A DNA stretch of 30,963 bases from positions 171,840 to 202,802 of the forward strand of contig JAKMXF010000331.1 in assembly GCA_024704765.1 (NCBI GenBank), read 5' to 3'. Under the pieces are notes generated by a model. It made no database searches, had not been told where the DNA came from, and was given only the letters and a program-made list of their open reading frames with translations. The translations under genes and the position numbers were made by a program. Shown here in pieces: positions 1 to 30,963 of the stretch. The first letter of the stretch is position 1; each line of letters starts with the position of its first letter. The DNA is from Oopsacas minuta. Its lineage: Eukaryota > Animalia > Porifera.

Positions 1-391
1 TTTAATTTTAGTTAGCTACTTTTATACTTCTAGATGGATATGTATTTCCCCTTAGTTTGTGAGTAGTTGATACATGCATGAATGTGAATAATTATATGTA
101 AGAGCTAGGATCATAACTGATATTATCTTGGGCATTAATCTAAAACATCGAAACGTTGATTTATTTCAGATGGCTATCATGTAAGAAGACAAAAAGACAG
201 CCACTACCATAAAATAACAGGAAAAATTTAGGAAATACATAAAAATCGTTGACTTGTAGATGGAAAATAAAAAACTGGACATGCTGGAAAGAATCTGAAA
301 ACAGATTTGAATTCAGCATAAAAAAAACTAGCTTAGAAAATGTTAATCTAATACTTGATGAGAAAATGAAGTTAAATTTTGTTGACCTGTG
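1..391 (+). mobile_element. 3' end (stop codon, 3' UTR, TIR) of a Chapaev3-type DNA transposon, copy A; the rest lies left of the window
   Basis: Reverse complement of 8607-~9000, differing by only a few substitutions and homopolymer indels by eye. Ends ...TTTTGTTGACCTGTG at 391 and is followed by ATA. Confidence 0.9.
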
Positions 392-930
392 ATACTTGTA
401 TATATTGTCTGTCAGTTTTCAAAGTTGCACAACGTACACATAAGTCTGTCATATGAGAGATGCACTTCTCTTTGTTCTATTAAAGATCCACTTGGTCACA
501 TTTGAATACATAATCACAATACAATTTTCGTTGATCGTAATAGTCCTTCATTGACGGACAGTTGACTCCTGCACGTAGTGCATCTCCTATAAAGAGATTC
601 CGCAATGGTATGGAAAATTCTTGAGGTCAATATTTTATTCAGTGAATTTTTATATCTTTTTTGGTAATTTATCACATTTACACATCTTTCTATAGAAAAT
701 TCATGGTAATGCTAGAGATTAGGTTGGAACATGTTGTTAGGGGTATTTAAGTGCGTAGAATCCGATTCTAACACTTTTACAGCCTGAGAGTTACAAATTG
801 ATATGATGTATCATATGATTAATCATGACTTCCCACCCTTTGGCATAATATTCAAAAGATGCTAGAAATTTCGTTTCAACAGTTAGACAGGGAAAATTGA
901 GCATGTGGATTCACATTTTGGCATTTTCAA
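392..930 (-). pseudogene. Probable 5' part of a decayed Chapaev-like transposase, separated from its 3' part (10912-11930) by an inversion
   Basis: The minus strand reads ...TYVYVVQL*KLTDNIYKY up to base 392. This joins through a shared TAT to VENLHFTAYILHL(G)PDYGCGL at 10912+, recreating the region before the first catalytic D. The left limit (~930) is approximate. Confidence 0.5.
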
Positions 931-944
931 ATCTGTATCTACTA

Positions 945-1050
945 ATGATTAATCAGGACGTCACTGTCTAAAAATCGAAAAAGTCTGATTTCATGACAAA
1001 ATTTTGAAAATTTCCATAACTAAATAACCGATTGTTATAAAACTTATACA
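945..1050. repeat. Dispersed repeat, probably a transposon subterminal sequence, with an inverted copy at ~22640-22745
   Basis: GACGTC...ATTTCATGAC(A/G)AAATTTTGAAAATTTCCAT...ACCGA is shared with the reverse complement of 22640-22745. Confidence 0.65.
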
Positions 1051-1314
1051 AATTCATTGTTGTCTCAATAACTAACGACTCACAAAGTTGAACAAATCGG
1101 AGGAGGTTGGTCAAATGATCAGGTGAGTGGACCTAAAATTCCCTAACTTGAAAATATTGGACATAAATAAAATTAGTTAGAAGTCTATTATAATCATAGT
1201 TGCAAATATATCGTTGCGAATATTTTGAAATTCTACTTTTGGTGCAATAAATGTGTAATTGATACTGTTAAACACACGCTTTATCTCCAAAATATTTCCA
1301 GCTAACTAAATTCT

Positions 1315-1790
1315 TTCGAATTCTGGGCTGGCGGGTGCGAAATCGATAAATCGAGCTCTAGCACAGCATGTGAACATATCTTAGTTAAATATAACCGTTG
1401 AGAACACATTTATATTTCTGAATATGGTAATAGACCTCGGGGGGGGGGGGCACTTTAAACATTTTGATCGGCCTTGTAATGCTCTAGGTCGACGACTGTG
1501 ACATCACCATATAAAGAGATATCAATGTCTTCTACTGGTTCTATATGGATAAGATATGTTTACATGCCATGTGAGAGCCCCATTCTTGATTTCGCACCGA
1601 CAGCAAAGAATTCGGCCCACAATCTTGACCAACACGTCCATCCTTTGGATTGGAGGTCTTAAGGATATTGTAGGCCGAATTCCTGGCTGGCCGATGCCAA
1701 ATAAAAAAATTGGGCTCTAACACGACATGTAAACATATCTTAGTTAGAAATAATTGTTTACAAATACGTTGACATCTCTACATATGTTGA
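1315..1790. repeat. Three degenerate copies of a ~70-75 bp module: forward 1315-1385, reverse 1549-1623, forward 1670-1745
   Basis: Core G(A/G)GCTCT..CA...CATGT(G/A)AACATATCTTA occurs three times. Copies 2 and 3 form an inverted repeat around a ~45-bp spacer. A G12 run lies at 1439-1450. Confidence 0.75.
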
Positions 1791-2368
1791 TGCCACAGTG
1801 CGGAATATTGGGTCCATTTAGAATATTTTGAGCGGCATTATAGACCATGGATAGACGAAAATGTAAACTCGCTTGGCTCACTCATATCGCATCCGATTGG
1901 TTTTAAATTTTCACACGTGTAGATAGGTAAGATCCTCAAAATATCATCCGAATTCGAGATCTAGAATTCTGCTTATCTAGCAGCCTAGACCCTTACCTAA
2001 TTATATCGAATATGCCGAATACGGATTTCACACATTTGTATTAATCATATGTAAATTTATTGTTGTTTTTAGGAAAATAAAGTAAACAAATTAAACAAAT
2101 CTAAAATCAACGTAGAGCCTGCTCTTAACGCTAAAATGGGGTAAAAAGTACGCTGAATAAGAATTCACATTTTCATGTTTCTCATATGTAAATTTATTGG
2201 GTTTTTTATGAATATCGGTAAAAGATTTCTAAATAGTTGTAGATACTTGGTTTTAATGGCTCTATTAGAGTAATCGAGTACTCTGTATCCGAATTTCGCT
2301 ATTTAAAGCATGCCTAAATAATTTATAGTTCTTGTAAAATATCGAGGCACGAATGGCGAGCCCAATTA

Positions 2369-2512
2369 AGGGGTGTAACTACCTTTGAGGCAGAGGAGAC
2401 AGTTGCCACCTCGCTATCTCGGGCGATGCCTCATCTCCCTATTGTAATCGCCATCATGTTGAGGCAATGGCCATCATTGAGTCCTCGCTCTGGGATCTCT
2501 AGTTACGCCCTA
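2369..2512. mobile_element. Small hAT-like MITE
   Basis: Imperfect TIRs AGGGGTGTAACTA (2369) and TAGTTACGCCCTA (ending 2512) around a GC-richer island. No matching TSD is visible. Confidence 0.5.
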
Positions 2513-3498
2513 GTGTATCATCAACGCCCTCTGAAAAGACTCTACTAGATCCGATGCTATTACCTTTACTCATTTCCTTGATAAATAAGCTGGGATCGAA
2601 AAGCTTATGTGCAGAAATTATTGAAAACACAGTAAGGCAATTTCAGAAAAAGTTTCCTTCCTGTGTCTTCAAAGAGTGTATATGTCTAATAGCAAAAATA
2701 AAATTATGAGTCATAAATATGTATGTTTATAAAACTTTACTACTACTTTTTAACAAAATATGAATTAGTATGCAAGTCATCTGCGAATAAATTCCTGGTG
2801 AAAATACAAAAGTTAGAAGATTGATTTTGCTTCACTAATAGTATTTTATATCAATAGTAATTTATAGATAACTAAACATATCACAGGATCAATATTAATT
2901 TGAATATATAAGTGCATCTATGGTCCAAATATGTTTGTGACTGTCATTGCCTTGGTGTATAGAATGCTATGATATTACCAAATAATTTGTATATAGTAGA
3001 AAGGCTGTATAAAAAAAAACAGGATGACATTCAAACCACGCGAAATTTATGCTGTTAAATGCTATAGCGTGTACATCATAGTAGCAAATTGTTCATTTAG
3101 TTATAAAACTACCAAAATTTAGACATATATACATTAGCGTAATATAAACATTTTGGATATTGGGAATTTGAAATGGTACATATGTTGGCTATGGCAGATA
3201 TGCACAATTTTTCACCTCCAATAATAGTTTACAGTGTACTAGTAAATGCAATCGAAACTGATATTTCTTGTCGATTTTTTTCACCATTTTCACTCTAAGT
3301 TTACAACAGTTATCAGAGATAAATAGATTTTCCATCAGCATATTCCTAACATCTGTTTATTCTTATCATATTGTGCTGTAGTATTAGTCATTTTAACCAA
3401 TTCTACGTTATATCGAAGTTTACCGTATAGAAGAATATTTTTAGTAAATAATCAGATACAATTTCAAACTAATTGATATTAATTATTAGATAAAGAAT

Positions 3499-3717
3499 TC
3501 ATCTTGAGCCAACCAATAGATTGATTATAGGTATATGGATTAATTTAACAAAATATCCAACAAATCCCATTATAGCAAATCCAGCTGCAGTAACCATAGC
3601 AACCATCAAGAATTCTTTCCTATCAGGTCTATTACAACGTTTTATCAATCGAATAGAATCCCTGGAAAATTGCTGCATGTAAGATGATGTGTCTGCCACA
3701 AAATGAGAAGGATCCAT
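3499..3717 (-). CDS. SEC61G: Protein transport protein Sec61 subunit gamma (SecE/Sss1 family), 72 aa, intact, no coding introns
   Basis: [21 protein letters not shown]...[27 protein letters not shown] matches the highly conserved Sec61-gamma sequence. A pyrimidine tract plus TAG at 3731-3733 looks like a 5'-UTR splice acceptor. Confidence 0.97.
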
Positions 3718-3867
3718 TATAAATATTTATCTATCAAAGTAGAGAATAAAAAAAGGAAATGGTAACATAATCGGAATAACACAACCAAGCTTCAAAGAAA
3801 CCAAAAATTGAAAAATTAATTTAAATATATCACCAGGGGCCTTATTCACTAAACTATTCATACTTAA

Positions 3868-5464
3868 GGGGAAACGGACATTTGGTTCCCTAGACATTTC
3901 GTTGCCTAGATATTACGTTGCCAATTACGTATCCAATGCTCAAGAATTTTAATAAAAGTAATGAGAGAATATGTTAATTTAATGATCTTATAATTTGTAA
4001 TTTAAGACAAGGCGTGAAGTATTAATGTAAAATATGTGTAATGTTCATATTAGAAATCAAATTTATGCGCCATTCCTCTTAGATATGTTAGAATCTCTCT
4101 ATTCTCGTAGTCTTCAACTAGTCTCAGGATTCTGAGATTTCTAGATTTACTGTGGTTTGAAGTTCTTGACACTTCGCCAGTCTAGCATCTGACTAGAGTT
4201 GCCTCCGGTAGAGATTACTCACGTTGTAGGTGCATTAAGAGCTTTACAAAACTTGGGTGTGAACAAGTGATTCTTGATTTAAAGGCATTATGCCATCCTT
4301 TGACTGAATTGTTTGTTCGGAGTAATCTGGATTTTACTCGTGTAAACATATTCCAAATTCCAAATTCGAATTGGAAAGCGTGGTATTCGTCTACTTTGAT
4401 CTTCACGTCCCTTTCCGAAGTAATTAACTTCAAAATATTCAGCTACCTCTTTACCTGATTCCGAAAATTACCCATCAATATTGTGAAGCAATCAATGACT
4501 TCAAATTCCGGCACAAAAGCTAGACTAATAACATCATTTTTATTGCAAATTCCTCATCTTCGAGATATAGTGTAGCCAACCCTATCGACTGTATTTGACG
4601 ATAAATGCTCTGCGACAGATGAAAAAAACAACCAGATATAACAGCTAAGAAATTTTATCCTACAGTATTGATTGAAGCTTTTTCGAAATCTACCATAATG
4701 GATGACGGATCTAATTCAGGTTCGATCTCTTTTAATATTTTGAGTAGTTCATCGCATGTAGATTGAAACTTGTTTAACATCAGTGCATATATGCATGGAA
4801 TGATGTATCCATCTTTCTAGTAATGAATTGTGTATAGCTGGAAAAATTGAATGGGAGCAGCTTTGAATGTACCATTTGAATACCAATTACTTGTGTCCCG
4901 TAAAAGGCTGAGCATTTGATGAGTGCCAAATACTAGCAGTCTGTTGGTTTCATGTATGCCTGAATCATATAGCAAGAATTGCTGTCCTTTTGAGGTTAAT
5001 TTATATATTTCAGGGATTATAATTTCCGTAGCCGTAGCAGAGTTATCAAAATTCTCACCACTGGATCTGGTGCGACGGATTGTCAGTTTTATTAAATTAA
5101 ATTTTGGTAATGCTGCTATAGTTGACTCATTCATTGATCCTAATCCACTAGCAAGTATGGACCTGGTACTGGTTCCAGAATTCAATGCGCGCTCTTTCAT
5201 TTGAGTGAAACCTTTAATCATCTCACCTCGCACAGGATTTGCTCCATGGGTGTGAGATGAGTAGATATCAGATCTGCTCTCAGGTTTTATCACAACTCCC
5301 TCTTTAGTAGAAATACGGGCTTTACAGGTTGCACGTTTTTCACAGTGCCAATGTAAGTACGGATAACAAGACTTAGTTAGAATATATAAAAAACCATCTA
5401 TGTAAGCCTTTTCTTTGCCTCTACTTGATTTCAGAATTTCAATCACAACATTTGGAGTGGCCAT
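3868..5464 (-). mobile_element. Mutator-like (FLYWCH-MULE) transposon remnant; transposase pseudogene 4050-5464
   Basis: FLYWCH-like KAYIDGFLY...HWHCEKRATCKAR...HTH, then WYSNGTFK (from DGTF), IMVDFEKA and TNNSVKGWHN (from EGWH), with several stops and frameshifts, ending at TAA 4050-4052. The terminus at ~3868 has three 16-bp subrepeats (3876-3923). The opposite TIR was not found. Confidence 0.9.
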
Positions 5465-5647
5465 GGGAATTGTAGTGCATATAAAATTCCATGTGCTACG
5501 TTCTATTTATACAATGTAATCAATTTACGCAATTTGATACCTTAGAACAAAATTAATTTGTTCCGAAAAGAACTATAACCTGTCAACAATAGGCTAGGCC
5601 GTGAACTACGTAATATAAGGACTGGAAACAGTAATAAAAAGCTGGAC

Positions 5648-8606
5648 CATGGATGAACTACAGGTGCATTTGTTTTTGCTATTTATTATTACCTGTGAAC
5701 TTTAAATAATAAAAGTACCTATTTTAATTGAATATCGACTCTGAAATTGGACCAGGGATGAGATAGAAGTCATTTAAATAAAGTATGTCATTATAATAGC
5801 ATATCATTGCTTAAAACTGAAATAATAACATAATAATAGGTCTAAAACAACATGAATAAAGAAATAGGAAACCAAAATCATCACAAAACTGTTAAGTGAT
5901 TTAGTAGCAGGAACTAATATGTCTTCTAAATAAATCTAAATTTCTTCAATTTCCGGGAATCATTCTTACTACAAGAAGTGATTTCAGAGTTGACATTCCG
6001 AACTTTATTAGCTAGTTTACAATTAGTACATACACTAAGGATCTTCCTAAGGATAGTCCAACCAGAAGTACCACAGCCCTTACAATTATCTCCCCAATGC
6101 TGGCTAAAATTATCAACCAACATATTTTCAGTCAGCTGAATTAATACCTTTCTTGATGGCGAGGAATAGAAGTGTTTCCTAAGAGTTTCATTCTCATCAA
6201 TCTTGATAAATATTTTCCATAATAGAACAATTTATTCAATTACTATTTCTGAAGGCCATTTCAGAGAACCACGATCAATGTACCTTGTAAGGTCATATTT
6301 AATAGTGTCTGTAATCTCAATATCTTGGTTCTCAGTTAGTTGCTGACTACAAAGATGGCAAGTGGCAGTTTTAAGATAAGAGTATACAGCGTAACCACCA
6401 ATAAATACAATTGATTGGAGAACATGAAGGTCGAGGTCAATAGAATTTAGATCATGTAACAATTCAGCATACTTATCGCAAGATATATTTGTGAGTTCAT
6501 CTGAAGTTGGAGAAAATGTGTTGATAAATTGTTTTAGGGTAAATTCACTTTTGCTTCGTTGTGATGAAAATTAACTTAAGAATACTTGACAAATTTAAGC
6601 GACGTTGACTCTCTAATATTTGAGAATAGGTGATATGATACTGAGCACCACTCATCATTCGATATAGACCAAATTGGTGTTCAATAGGGTCATTCTGAAG
6701 TCGAGAGCTTGGAACATACTCATATCCACAATTCTGAGTTAGGTGTGAAACGATCTACGGGAGAACTATACAAGAATGACGAAAACTTATTAAGGTTTGT
6801 GGACTAAGTTTCCCACCCCTACCAGTTGTTGAACTCCATCGCTCAAGCTATTCAGAAACTAATTCAAGATACACAAAATGCCAATCTTAGTCTGTGAGAG
6901 GCCTGGAATACTCATCATTCAAGCGGACGTGTTTGAAAGGCGTGTTTATGTTGAAGATTTTCCAAACCTTACTAATTACATCGACAAAGTTAGAAGTGTC
7001 ATTTGCTGAATCTGGGTGCAAGTCACATTGAATTTTAATAACTGCACAAGTTGAATCATTGAATATGCGAAGAGCTAGATTAACATTTTGACGTTCTAGA
7101 CTTGTAGGCCAACACGCCTTGGAACTAAGTCTGTGAGCTTGCTTGACAGTAGAATGCTGTTCACTTTTGTACAACAATCAGATATTATTAAACTTTGCCT
7201 CATTCTGGTTGGTAGTAGAAGTAGGGAGTAAAGAATAGATATGCATATCTGGATATATAAAAGTAAGATCAGAGTCCTTTAGGTTTAGCCAATTGTTTCT
7301 TATTGACTTGATAATATGTACGAAATCAAACATTATATAAAGGTTTCTCTCAGGACAAGCTGGATGTGGAACAACAGGAAGTAATGTCTTTTGGTCGGAG
7401 GAATATAATATGAATAAATGTACATTCAATGAGAAGTTGTCTGTCACGAGTACTTAAACGAATAAACCACACTTTTCAATATCAAAGATTACAGAGTTAA
7501 CAATTGGGTGTAGTTCTTCAGCGGTAGAAAAGGTTGAGGGAAACAACTTAACAACTTGTGACCATTTTTTGGATAAACTAGAGATCATCAAGGCAAAACC
7601 TTTTTAGTCGGAGTAGTAGGATCAATCTCACCAACCACCTTCCCGCCTAAACAACATAATATGAAAAGTTAGACTACCATAATTAGAAATTATATTACCA
7701 TTTATTACCTTGATAGGAAATATCAAATGAAACGTGGATCTCGTCCATATTGAGGGCAACATGTCGATTCCTCTTAGAAAAATCTACTGTTAAGTTCTTA
7801 AGTATATGGAAATATTCACTATCTAACCCAATGCAAGACGATAATGCACGAAGTGATCAGTTGTTGGAAGAAATAGACAATCCAATGATTGAAAAAACAG
7901 ATAGCAAGCAGGTGAGATCAAATGTGCTTTCAAGGCGATTGCCTAGAATTAGTAAAAAGGTAAAAAAGAAAGAAAATAGATAAGAAATGTAGAAACACTA
8001 ACCTGAGTAACTACGTTATACCTCCTTTTGGTTGGTGAAACTAATGAGTTTTCAAGCTGACAAGTAATGATCTGTAGGAGGGGTAACAAAGTAGTTCCCT
8101 TTACATCATGCTCAGTTATTTCTGTATTTTCTAATATTGAGATTGATTATTGCAATTTAGTGACCGCCTCTTTGATATTTTCTAGAACAAAACTGGGTTC
8201 AAATAACTCAGGATTAGTGTAGTTTAGAATATCACCACTTAAGATTTCAATTTGTCGTATATCGGTTAATCGACTGAGACTCAAAGGAATATGGTGTTGG
8301 CAACAAACTACTGAAACTGTTAAATCTGAATGAATTGATAAGGTAGATAGAATATGTAGAGACTGATGGCGAATTCAAGCTGCATGATCTCTAAGGTATT
8401 ACTAGAGGAATACCAGATCGCCCAATCTTGGATAAGGTGTAACTCTGGCAACTTAAATTTAAGATCCTCAAAATTCCCCAAACAGAAGTGTAATGGATCT
8501 TGCGGATCTTGTATAATGGCATCGTGAAGAGCTTTAGCAAAGTTTTCCTCATCCTTAGATTCAAGATTTAAAAGTTTGCTATTCGACCAGTTGTATTCAA
8601 GTATAA
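5648..8606 (-). mobile_element. P-element (THAP9-like) transposon remnant, copy 1; coding remnant 5926-8606; THAP end cut off at the Chapaev3 junction
   Basis: Motifs LNMDEIH, VTDNFSLN, FDFVHIIK, WPTSLERQNVNLALRIFNDST, FIGGYAVY and DRGSLKWP, with many stops and frameshifts. Putative terminus CATGGATGAACTACAGGTG at 5648. Confidence 0.9.
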
Positions 8607-10911
8607 CACAGGTAAACAAAATTTAACTTCATTTTCTCATCAAGTATTAGACTAACATTTTCTAAGCTAGTTTTTTTTATGCTGAATTCAAATCTGTTTT
8701 CAGATTCTTTCCAGCATGTCCAGTTTTTTATTTTCCATCTACAAGTCAACGATTTTTATGTATTTCCTAAATTTTTCCTGTTATTTTATGGTAGTGGCTG
8801 TCTTTTTGTCTTCTTACATGATAGCCATCTGAAATAAATCAACGTTTTTTTTTCGATGTTTTTAGATTAATGCCAAGATAATATCAGTTATGATCCTAGC
8901 TCTTACATATAATTATTCACATTCATGCATGTATCAACTACTCACAAACTAAGGGGAAATACATATCCATCTAGAAGTATAAAGGTAGCTAACTAAATTA
9001 AAAGTGTTGAGAATACGACTTACTTTTATATATCTTGTTGCGATTATCTCTGAAGAGCCACCAACAGTAATCGGACATCATGCCCTCATTCCAGAAACCT
9101 TGGTATCGGGTTTCCATCTCCTGTATGTCTTGGTGGAATCTCTCACCCTGTTCATCACTTACAGCTCCAAGGTTCTCAGGGAAAAAATCAAGGTGAGAGT
9201 GCAAGAAGTGAAGTTTTAGCGACATGCAACAGCCCATCTTCTCGTATGCGTTAAGCAAGGTTGCCACTCCTTCTCTGTAGTTGGACGACTTCTTGTTGCC
9301 CAAAAAGTTTTCACAAACCCATTTGAAAGAATTCCAAGCACTCATTTCTAATTCGGATAATGTCTTCTCGAAATCTGGATCTCTGAATACTTGTCTGATT
9401 TGTGGTCCTACAAATACTCCCTCTTTTAACTTTGCCTCGCTTAGTTTCGGAAATTTGCCTACCAAATGCAGAAATCCTGCTGAATTTGTTTTACCCATTG
9501 TTTTAACGAATGTTTTCATTAATCCAAGTTTAATATGAAGTGGGGGTAAGAAAACTTGGTTTGGATCTACCAATGGCGAATGCTGTAAATTGGTTTTCCC
9601 CACTTCATAGGTTCTCTTCGGCCAATCACATTTTTTATAATGTTCACCAGTTGCTCGGCTGTCCCATAGACATAGGAAACAACAATACTTTGTAAAACCT
9701 TGTTGCAAGCCCATTAATAGCCCGATTATCTTAAGATCACCGCAGATATTCCATATATCTATTCTATACTGTATTGCCTCCAAAACTTCCTGCAAATTGA
9801 CGAAGGTTTCTTTCAGATAGACGGAGTGAGCAATTGGAACGCCAGGCTTTAGATTTCCGTTATGCAACAGAACAGCTTTCAAATTGCGTTTTGACGAGTC
9901 GATGTAAAGGCGCCAATCAGAGGAAGAATGTTCTTGCAATACGTTTGCATAGAGTCCTTCGATATCATTACAATAGCACAGTGGACCATCAGTGGTGTAG
10001 TATTGAGCGAGATCGAAATTTCGCTTGCGATAGTGGGATACTAGGACATCTTTGTCGAGTAGGTTTTTCTGTTTGAGCCTGGATGCAAGGAGTTCAGCTT
10101 TGTCTTTAGATAAGTCTAGATCCCTGACCAGATCATTCAATTCTCCCTGTGTAAATGTTTGTGACTTTAGTAATTCATCTTCCGGGACATAATTAGCATC
10201 TGTAGAATCTGCATGGACATCTTCCACCATATCAGACCCGATTTTAATTTGCTATGGCTTGGGAAATGGGATTGGTAATGAGATGTTGTGTGGAATTGGC
10301 CTGCGAGCAGAATCCAAGTCTGGGTAAACAAGAGCGTGCTTATTCTTGGCTGAGAATCCTGTAATGTCGATAAGGCAAAAGTAACAATCATCAAGGTGAT
10401 TTTTCTGTTCCCTCCAGACGATGGGTATTGCAAATGGCATTGAAACTTCCCTTTTGTTCAACCAATCACGTAGTCCACTTGAACAAGAAGTGCATATAAC
10501 ATGTGGTGCCCATGACTTGTCTTGGTCACCAAGTGGACATTCGAAGTACAATTTATATATGTTCTTTAATTGATTTGTGATTGGTCGTCTTTGTGATTTT
10601 ACGCAAAAATGACCACAAACGTAACAGAAATTGTCGGGATGAGTTCTACAATTACGATGCATGTTTATAATTTGATTTGCTTGAATTCAAATAAGTAAAG
10701 TCATTTATAGTCCAGATAATTGAATCAGAATAGGCATGCTCATATAGCAATTTAGTAACTAGGTAATACTATACTATTGAAAAAATGGATATTGGATTTC
10801 AGAATAACTAGACGTGCTAGAGAAATTCTGATTGCACATTCGAGTTCAGCATTCAAAAGTATGCTAAGATAAATGTATGTGATCTCTGATGAGAAATCTT
10901 GTTGAGTTGTG
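8607..10911 (-). mobile_element. Chapaev3-type DNA transposon, copy B, 2305 bp, both ends present
   Basis: CAC...GTG termini with imperfect ~90-100 bp TIRs (CACAGGTAAACAAAATTT.. and CACAACTCAACAAGATTT..). The flanks TAA (left) and TAT (right) do not match each other. Confidence 0.88.
8998..10662 (-). pseudogene. Chapaev3-type transposase, 554 codons, one in-frame TAG at 10252-10254
   Basis: ORFs 10252-10662 and 8998-10230 are in the same frame, separated by TAG plus 7 sense codons. Zn-finger N-terminus (FCYVCG..WAPHVICTSC..WREQKNHLDDCYFC); catalytic-type motifs YIDSS, ICGDLK and SDEQGERFHQ; also CCFLC, LPPLHIKLG and KLHFLHSH. Confidence 0.9.
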
Positions 10912-12160
10912 TATGTGGAGAATCTTCATTTCACAGCCTACATTTTACACTTGGTCCGGATTATGGTTGTGGATTAACAAACTTTGTTATGTGATTACAC
11001 CTGAGAACTATGAAGAACTCTTATTCTTTTGAGTCTCAAGTGTTTCTGATGGTAACTATACCTTGGCCATGATTATGAATTTGCTTCAAATTCTGAAGTG
11101 CTTAATGATTACATTATATCATTTACTGTTGATCTGAAAGCAGCGGCACTCTGTCTGGGTATTATGCTTTGACGTTATCAATGCATTTGATGTGATGGGA
11201 TGTCAGAAGGCGGTTGGATAAAGTAATGAATAAATCTAGAACTGCAGCACATAATTCAGAAATCTACCATAAACTCTCAGCAAAATGTGATTGCGACGCA
11301 AAGAATCATGCGATTGAGTGTGAGAGGGTAGAGGATACGGAGGCTCTAGGCGTGTGGCTGTCTGATCACAAAATTCAAGAGTTGCATCTTTTATAAGGAA
11401 TTGAACAGAAGTCATATAATTCAATCGTGACTGCTATTTCTGACGAACAATTAGCTACACAAGAAATACTACCTAAACATAACGACATTTCAAGAATTTG
11501 ATTCCCCGGAGGAGCATTTCAAGGTAATGCCATGCGGAAAATCACTTTGTTGGTGGATGAGATTGGTTTCCAATGAATAACTCTTCTTTTAATGCACTAA
11601 AGCGATTTTCAGAAGTAGTGAAAGCATGTTTCTGGCAAAAGATCGAAGGGCCAAATACGTACGTTTGCGATCTTCCAATTTGTACAAGTATTTCGGCTTA
11701 CTGGACTAAACTGTTCATCAAAGATCAATATAATGTGTCGACACATCTTCCCAATTATCACACAATTCCTGACTGATGGCATGGGATTAGGAGCTGTTTC
11801 GGAACACGCAGCGGAATCAACTCATTCTTGAGAAAATTTGTGGAAATTATATAGGTAGTGAATCGCTAGAAATCTATCAAGAAAACTACTCAACGCTGTT
11901 AAAGTTATCAATTTCGCAAGTTTTATTTCTAATTGATCGGTACCACTTGTTTTTTTTACTATTACAATAATTTATTAGTTTAGTCTAAAACGAAAAATTG
12001 ATTTTTGTAACAAACTGTCTATTTACCAAAACTAACATATTTCAAAAATGGGTGCACTAAATTTGGTTTGACACAATATCGGAATCTTCAAATATTCTAC
12101 ATAAGAAAGTTCAAAAATCCGATTGACCTCATCTTTCATACTTTTTCTGTCAAACCTGTG
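10912..12160 (+). pseudogene. 3' part of an older, heavily decayed Chapaev-like transposase with its 3' terminus (..CAAACCTGTG at 12160)
   Basis: Fragments GPDYGCGL, FTVDLKAAALCLGIM, GAFQGNAMRKI, GLNCSSKINIMCRHI...GMGLGAVSEHAAESTH and RKLLNAVKVIN follow the D..DLK..H..SEQxxES pattern. The TIR-like end reads CACAGGTTTGAC inward. Confidence 0.7.
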
Positions 12161-12415
12161 ATTTATAGGCGGATTTACTTGAATTTTGATAGTACAACTT
12201 GAAAATGACTTCCTCTCAATGTGAAAAGCCACAATAATGGATGACAAGCGCAAGTGTTCCACAGTGGCTTAATTTGGAAGCTCATGAATCGAATTAGAAC
12301 CTCATTTTTCTTCGATAACTTCAATTTCTAAGGATAATAAGTCATCATGACATATCATTTTAAATAATTATATTTACTGCTAGATGTTGAAGTATTACAC
12401 ACAGTTCGAGTTTTG

Positions 12416-13420
12416 CGAGGGGCACTCAATACGTTTTAAGCCTGACTATGTTGCTAGCTCTTATATAAGTAAACCATTACTTGTTTCGAATAACCATGGG
12501 ATAAATATACTTCGCTGAAAATCTTGTAACTCTATCTTGTATACTTTTCAGATAGCAGTAGTTTTATTATTTATGGATTCCTTAGTTACCAAATCCTCAA
12601 TACAGTTATCAAGGCGTGATAATCGTGCGATAGTACTTTTTCAGTCCCAACTTTTGAAAACAATTAAAGAAGATCGCGAAAATTTCTGTACAGCCTTTCC
12701 AAATAACAGCGTATCTGCAGAAACAGTGAAAAGATGGTACAGAGAATTTAAGTGCGGAAATTTCATCTTGAAGACCAACTCCGCCCTGGACCACCCCCTA
12801 CGCTGTAGAGGGAATTGTTGAGTCAATTGAAGAAATGGTGATAGCAGACCCAAATGTTGCATATGAGAGGATTCAGCACGAAATTGGCATTTCACCCGGG
12901 GCAGTGCACACCGTTTTACACCAATCCCTTCAGCTACGTAAACTTTGTGCCCGTTGGATCCCACATCAGCTTCATCCTGAGCAGAAGCAGAATCGAGTGA
13001 AATGGTGCCATGAAATGCTTAAAAAATTGAACAATGGCAACAGTAGAGATGTTTCCAAGATATTAACTGGTGATGAAACATGGATCTATCACTATGATAC
13101 GGAAACAAAGCAGCAGAGCCATCAATGGTGTGAAATTGGAGAAGGTCCCCCAACAAAGGTTCGCAGAACTCTGTACACTAAGAAACAAATGTATGCATTT
13201 TTTAATACAATGGGTGTTAAAACTGTTGTACCTCTTGAACCTGGTAAGATAAATAATTCAACCTGGTATACAGAGAGTTGTTTGCCTCTAGTCATAAAAG
13301 CAATAAGTTTACAGCGTCCTGGCACAGGATTAAGGGGAACTTTTTTTGCACGACGATAATGCCAGTTCTCATACATCAAAAATGACAAGACAATTCATTA
13401 AAGAATCATGTAATATAACA
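12416..13420 (+). mobile_element. mariner transposon remnant 1, 3'-truncated, nested in the Transib-like element
   Basis: 5' TIR-like CGAGGGGCACTCAATACG at 12416. Motifs VKRWYREFK, ARWIPHQL, ILTGDETWIYHY and (frameshifted) HDDNASSH. Breaks off before YSPDL. Confidence 0.9.
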
Positions 13421-30877: not shown

Positions 30878-30963
30878 CACAGTGGCTTAGTAGTAGAGAA
30901 TTAAGAAACTTTTTATAGTAATGCTTTCATTCCTTTATGGTTTCTTTGTGTTTCTAAACATTC
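30878..30963. mobile_element. Probable terminus of a second Transib-like element extending beyond the window
   Basis: CACAGTGGCTTA is identical over 12 bp to the terminus at 12260. It is preceded by AAGTA. Confidence 0.5.

Follow-up and report, generated by a model that had tools for sequence, protein, structure and literature searches.

The window analysed here, 30,963 nucleotides of the glass sponge Oopsacas minuta (positions 171840-202802 of scaffold C331, JAKMXF010000331.1), contains an 8.2-kb segment that carries the gene for Sec61-gamma and lies between two oppositely oriented copies, A and B, of a Chapaev3 transposon. The assembly to which it belongs comprises 365 scaffolds and 61 Mb at 36% G+C. 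Runs of N adjoin the window, 1490 directly to its left and 3458 directly to the right of position 30963; because they bound it on both sides and are uneven in length, we take them for scaffold gaps, and the window for a single contig inside the scaffold. Read from the left, the locus consists of a left flank, the triplet TTA, copy A in inverted orientation with its interior represented by N, the triplet ATA, the 8.2-kb segment, the triplet TAA, copy B, the triplet TAT and a right flank. The 'CACAGG' ends of both copies point to the 8.2-kb segment. As set out below, the flanks of the two copies are exchanged crosswise, and we think it probable, though by no means secure, that the two Chapaev3 copies brought about a real inversion, which flipped the Sec61-gamma segment.

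Copy B (8607-10911, plus strand) is complete at 2305 bp, with CACAGG..GTTGTG ends (CACAGGTAAACA ... GTTGAGTTGTG), and holds frames of 144 and 417 amino acids split by a frameshift. Read by eye, the 417-amino-acid frame includes CFLC, PPLHIKLG and HFLHSH, which correspond to C(2)C, LH and H(4)H motifs; neither frame has a Pfam match. Copy A is visible in the window as a single end on the minus strand (1-391; element positions 1-396, ending ..GTTGACCTGTG), and its remainder is accounted for by the 1490 N and by C331:170085-170349. A repeat search pairs window positions 1-394, inverted, with 8604-9003. This 'a' end of copy A is 96.7% identical to positions 8607-9003 of copy B over 398 aligned columns, where about half of the differences are changes in poly-T length and three others lie within 16 bp of the contig end. 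The sequence to the left of the N run includes 265 bp that are 98.9% identical to the reverse complement of positions 2041-2305 in copy B. Once the poly-T lengths and the three contig-edge differences are dropped, A and B differ by substitutions at about 0.8% of the 656 sequenced bp. The inverted repeat reported in the earlier note is therefore present, and its description of the copies as near-identical applies to 656 of about 2300 bp. At both ends the nearest relative of A is B ('a', 96.7% against 94.9% for the next best copy; 'b', 98.9% against 98.1%), and the two have in common private variants that are missing from 29 other copies of the family. The N run itself, at 1490, is not much shorter than the 1644 bases that separate, in copy B, the two stretches sequenced in A, as would be expected from read pairs linking the left contig to the window if a whole copy sits there.

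Chapaev3 elements are characterised by CAC..GTG ends, by insertion between A and T with duplication of a TWA target, and by a transposase in which the motifs C(2)C, LH and H(4)H occur (PMC4079192). More than 40 copies of the element are present in the genome at 93-97% identity. We fetched 29 of these (L002-L030) for a survey of flanks, which together with copy B gives 30 copies, the best-scoring of about 40 listed. The start is CAC in 25 of the 29 other copies and the end is GTG in the same number; TTA or TAA occupies 48 of their 58 flanks, perfectly matching 3-bp duplications surround 18 of them, and the context of the TWA is mostly ATTA..TTAT or ATAA..TAAT, i.e. A|TWA|T. On the strength of these termini, the duplications and the reading of the transposase motifs, copies A and B are assigned to the Chapaev3 group of the CMC (Chapaev-Mirage-CACTA) transposons. 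A full frame of about 555 amino acids is found in none of the 30 copies, all of which carry frameshifts or stops although some pairs are 99-100% identical. Any recent movement must accordingly have taken place in trans, with transposase supplied from elsewhere.

The triplets that adjoin copies A and B do not match across either element. They are arranged as TTA[A]ATA ... TAA[B]TAT, so that the triplet on the inner side of each copy, when reverse-complemented, equals the one on the outer side of the other copy. The earlier note gave ATA at 392-394, TAA at 8604-8606 and TAT at 10912-10914, all of which read as described, and it expected TTA before copy A, where we found it directly preceding the 265-bp end left of the N run. 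ATA is the reverse complement of the TAT to the right of copy B, and the two are the halves of a non-canonical duplication made by insertion into a decayed Chapaev-like element. TAA is likewise the reverse complement of the TTA preceding copy A; it is half of the duplication that accompanied insertion into a P element, and has the canonical A|TTA|T context. For TTA and TAA, which are mutual reverse complements, a crosswise match at TWA targets is of little informative value. TAT is a different matter. The earlier note doubted it as a Chapaev3 duplication, and with good reason, since it occurs in none of the 58 flanks of the 29 other copies. Its rarity strengthens the cross-match, and makes the crosswise TAT of A and B informative rather than a matter of chance.

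The elements that copies A and B interrupt provide a further means of restoring the original order. To the left of copy B, the body of a P-like (THAP9-type) element extends over 5596-8603 on the minus strand (its left limit is approximate); it is cut at 8603 by the Chapaev3 insertion and its frames are broken. Its only domain match, a TNP-like GTP-binding insertion domain at 6890-7177, scores 22.1 bits, under the Pfam cut-off of 24.8. The 800 bp ending at 8603 (7804-8603) are 91-93% identical to P-like copies on scaffolds C177, C104 and C156. The sequence of these copies beyond this match ends in ...CAGTGCCTATTATTTTCCAAGCAGGCCCATCA, and the 35 bp to the left of copy A end in ...CAGTGCCTATTATTATCTAAGCAGGGGCCCATTA. 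When this 35-bp stub is joined to the reverse complement of the sequence that ends at 8603, all three P copies match the product without interruption, and one triplet occupies the site of the joint (TTA here, TCA there). The stub would be where the putative THAP domain ends, at AVPIIF in the paralogue; in a paralogous P copy, the insertion site is immediately preceded by a THAP-like stretch, C-x2-C ... AVPIIF. The earlier note predicted that the missing THAP half of the P element would lie to the left of copy A; the flank is indeed P sequence, and what is left of the THAP half there is the 35-bp stub. An unrelated repeat of about 730 bp with at least 40 copies (C331:169325-170052; L031:7486-8213) ends exactly where the stub begins, and there is no further P sequence from the 5' part within 20 kb to the left of it.

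Another prediction, of a P-element end formed by GTCCAGCT and CATGGAT to the left of copy A, failed, as no such end occurs in the 20 kb leftward. The corresponding CATGGAT in the window (5648) was itself rejected as the end of the P element, because homology to P copies runs about 57 bp beyond it and includes the supposed 8-bp duplication. Positions 5596-5796, which include it, have homology to the 5' region of the P copy on C177, and this piece resembles a long terminal inverted repeat of that element.

The second interrupted element was restored in the same way. Its downstream part lies to the right of copy B (10915-11692, plus strand) and its upstream part just inside copy A (396-561, minus strand). 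The sequence 10912-11711 matches about 20 copies of one repeat family at 72%, from its sixth base on, and the reverse complement of 392-640 matches copies of the same family at 77%, up to base 396. In at least 17 family copies the sequence matched by 396-561 comes directly before that seen from 10917 onwards. The two matches are 7 bases apart in every family copy and 6 bases apart in the sequence rejoined through one TAT, a single 1-bp indel. The earlier note's expectation that the rejoined 392/10912 sequence would be colinear with other Chapaev-like copies thus holds at the DNA level. Its reading of a continuous frame across the same joint does not: the window's copy is a pseudogene with many stops, in which DNIYKY and PDYGCG do not share a frame, and we reject the frame as evidence of coding. 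An intact copy of the family elsewhere has an open frame straight across the insertion site. Calling this family 'Chapaev-like' is a thinly supported choice, suggested by a DLK..G..C..C.WD motif that it shares with the protein of copy B (one 33-amino-acid motif, E = 8e-5 in a pairwise comparison); the family protein has no Pfam match.

Taken together, the exchanged duplications, the TTA and P stub beyond copy A, and the way in which both interrupted elements become colinear with other copies once rejoined indicate that the segment (395-8603), as assembled, is inverted relative to the order at the time when both Chapaev3 copies were inserted. This conclusion is drawn from comparison of flanks with paralogous copies of the interrupted elements. 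Neither a left flank of copy A that is unrelated to the P element or carries an ATA duplication, nor a loss of colinearity at 392/10912, was found; the earlier note had named both as grounds for abandoning the inversion. It might alternatively be supposed that the two copies are unrelated insertions whose flanks match by chance or have mutated, or that an inverted segmental duplication carried the element along, with no inversion in either case. The low information content of TWA targets would allow for this. Against it, TAT is missing from the 58 other flanks, the flanks of A and B are different elements rather than duplicates (P on the left and Chapaev-like on the right of copy B, as the earlier note had it and as the matches on each side agree), and neither unrelated insertions nor a segmental duplication can make both pairs of flanks, once rejoined, colinear with independent copies. 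We regard this explanation as extremely improbable.

An error of assembly is a much stronger competitor, and one that we consider a serious possibility, if short of an even chance. Here the four junctions between elements and flanks would all be real, with the wrong entry and exit paired through the collapsed twin repeat, and nothing would be inverted in the animal. Several observations weigh against a real inversion in this way. For assemblers based on a de Bruijn graph, it is a classic ambiguity which way round a segment lies when near-identical inverted repeats flank it, and the twin copies here are about 99% alike in substitutions at their sequenced ends. Copy A is broken by a scaffold gap, with the N run inside it, there is an N run at either edge of the window, and the link between the left flank and the window rests on read pairs rather than on sequence. 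The assembly was produced by hybrid SPAdes from Illumina reads, Nextera mate pairs and corrected PacBio reads, followed by SSPACE, Pilon and GapFiller, and so combines a de Bruijn graph with scaffolding and gap filling (PMC10280926). Polishing with short reads cannot correct the choice, since the same four short junctions are present in both orientations; for this reason only data that span 2.3 kb can decide between them. No contig from four public runs of one sample spans copy B, as k-mer contigs break inside an element with more than 40 copies, and an exact look-up of the Sec61-gamma protein for independent assemblies returned no record.

Contigs from the public runs do confirm the junction between the end of copy B, TAT and the right flank, on two haplotypes. 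The right flank (10884-12485) occurs in two versions among these one-sample contigs, one equal to the assembly and the other about 1.7% different, and both have the junction with copy B. The insertion is thus present on both haplotypes, or in all of the individuals if several were pooled.

Other evidence is less easily reconciled with a mistake of assembly. Copy B was crossed by the assembler without a gap, and the left contig was linked to the window by the scaffolder across a gap whose size fits one element, so that both steps would have to err together. PacBio reads, moreover, went into the assembly (PMC10280926). The remaining argument comes from other pairs of Chapaev3 copies. The most similar pairs among the 30 fetched copies are those that share a scaffold. 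On scaffold C342, copies at 153518-155799 (plus strand; L015) and 174859-177140 (minus strand; L014) are inverted, 100% identical over 2282 bp and separated by 19 kb, and there is no N within 1.5 kb of either. Their flanks read TTA[..]TAA ... AAA[..]TTA. At least eight copies of a host repeat have the outer left flank of the first copy next to the reverse-complemented inner flank of the second, with the 3-bp duplication as the overlap between the two, and this adjacency indicates that the C342 pair is swapped too. An inverted segmental duplication was considered for this pair and rejected, the four flanks having no similarity to one another.

A third close pair, on scaffold C346 (167832-170131, plus strand, L023, and 180616-182910, minus strand, L021), is likewise inverted, 99.65% identical and 10.5 kb apart. 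It has no matching duplications; of its flanks, one is found nowhere else and the other begins where a repeat ends. Three further twin pairs are 98.7-99.1% identical and 41-80 kb apart (C343:1062334/1128720, C301:202304/282573 and C346:126864/167832). Two of them are inverted, and each copy retains its own matching duplication; these pairs represent local hopping without inversion. Among the 40 best Chapaev3 copies, then, all three same-scaffold pairs closer than 20 kb, including A and B, are inverted twins with non-matching flanks, and two are proven to be swapped. Were orientation settled by coin-toss error, both testable close inverted pairs swapped and a third with mismatched flanks would be expected once in four to eight times. 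Whichever explanation is correct for the Sec61-gamma segment, the orientation of many segments between near-identical inverted repeats in this assembly is unverified, and synteny, gene models and counts of inversions that depend on it call first for a check with long reads.

One Chapaev3 element inserted into the P element just after the putative THAP domain, duplicating TTA, and its twin sits in the decayed Chapaev-like element, where it duplicated TAT. If the inversion is real, two histories can be proposed for it. By a first route, the twin would have arisen by a local hop, followed by homologous exchange between the two inverted twins. By a second, insertion of a hybrid element would have done everything in a single step: one end from each sister-chromatid copy of one element would insert nearby, making the second copy and the inversion at once. 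Sec61-gamma would in both cases have been turned round undamaged. The mobilised ends are one 'a' and one 'b' end, a proper pair, so the geometry fits either route. That the copies are twins, and that close pairs are inverted and swapped, makes us lean to the one-step route, while the generality of homologous exchange makes us lean to recombination. We give the two about equal weight, and hold each only tentatively.

Chimerism between the copies cannot show here, because each is the other's nearest relative at both ends and copy A has N for its interior; nor does their likeness of about 99% separate the routes, since twins that later recombined would also look alike. The earlier note proposed that ectopic recombination or alternative transposition flipped the segment, and the tests on the flanks support this in part, for the order as assembled; in the real DNA such a flip is no more than probable, and both routes fit without being separable. 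It may be supposed more broadly that hybrid-element insertion gives rise to close inverted twins in this genome in the same step as the inversion, and that this is routine for Chapaev3, but we find that generalisation rather doubtful. Two other schemes, reversed-ends transposition into an excised circle and re-insertion of the whole composite, were rejected by reasoning: they would leave direct duplications at new breakpoints within the segment, or else fresh duplications at the outer ends, and neither is seen.

Whatever its route, an inversion made in this way is a known kind of event, here in a new host and a new group of transposons. Exchanged duplications around inverted copies are produced both by ectopic recombination, which leaves chimeric copies, and by hybrid-element insertion, which leaves identical ones, and the two products are otherwise nearly the same (Delprat et al., PMC2775673). 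The closest parallels are the Galileo inversions 2j, 2q7 and 2z3 of Drosophila buzzatii, in which, as here, cut-and-paste elements lie in opposite orientation at the breakpoints, their target duplications are exchanged, and a single copy of the target is present in the uninverted state (PMC2775673). For Galileo, uninverted chromosomes were sequenced and both copies proved to be chimeric, which established ectopic recombination (PMC2775673). In O. minuta, by contrast, the interrupted elements are compared with their own paralogues, A and B are twins, one interior is unsequenced, and the orientation is that of the assembly.

Hybrid element insertion was described for P elements by Gray, Tanaka and Sved in 1996 (as cited in PMC2775673). 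Similarly to the arrangement around Sec61-gamma, hybrid element insertion or alternative transposition yields in one event a local inversion, two identical copies in opposite orientation and exchanged duplications, by mobilising one 'a' and one 'b' end. Alternative transposition is reportedly a property of Ac/Ds in maize. To our knowledge, such events have been demonstrated experimentally for the P and hAT superfamilies, and not for Chapaev/CMC. Unlike those cases, the action of a transposase would here be read from sequence only, in a family in which all 30 copies have broken frames. In bacteria, the intramolecular replicative transposition of IS and Tn elements also yields inversions, with the same arrangement of flanks and inverted twin copies as found here. 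That route needs a replicative, nick-and-copy mechanism, which we do not know from any eukaryotic CMC transposase.

If real, the inversion is a clean and datable case in which a transposon has turned a housekeeping gene round without harm. With the C342 pair, it hints that inversions between twin copies may be common in a glass sponge, and the one-step route, if true, would steadily supply this compact genome of 61 Mb with inversions on the kilobase scale.

The segment itself is made up of one gene and the remains of mobile elements. The Sec61-gamma coding sequence (3502-3717, minus strand) is an intact 72 amino acids without a stop, in a single coding exon, and scores 48.4 bits against PF00584 (Sec61-gamma / SecE), well above the curated cut-off of 22.7. 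It is the sole match in the genome. The earlier note's statement that the segment carries this gene is therefore borne out. The coding sequence directly follows a pyrimidine tract and AG, and the locus bears no trace of poly-A, which suggests a host gene rather than a retrocopy. The breakpoints are 3.1 and 4.9 kb from the gene, both inside dead transposons. Adjoining Sec61-gamma is the remnant of a transposon with a FLYWCH zinc finger (4218-5506, minus strand), which may be MULE-like, judging by the frame at 4218-4442, an attribution without Pfam support. Finally, positions 629-955 contain a repeat unit of about 300 bp that is found at 72-78% identity in at least 40 places in the genome, and adjacent partial matches at several of these suggest tandem arrays.

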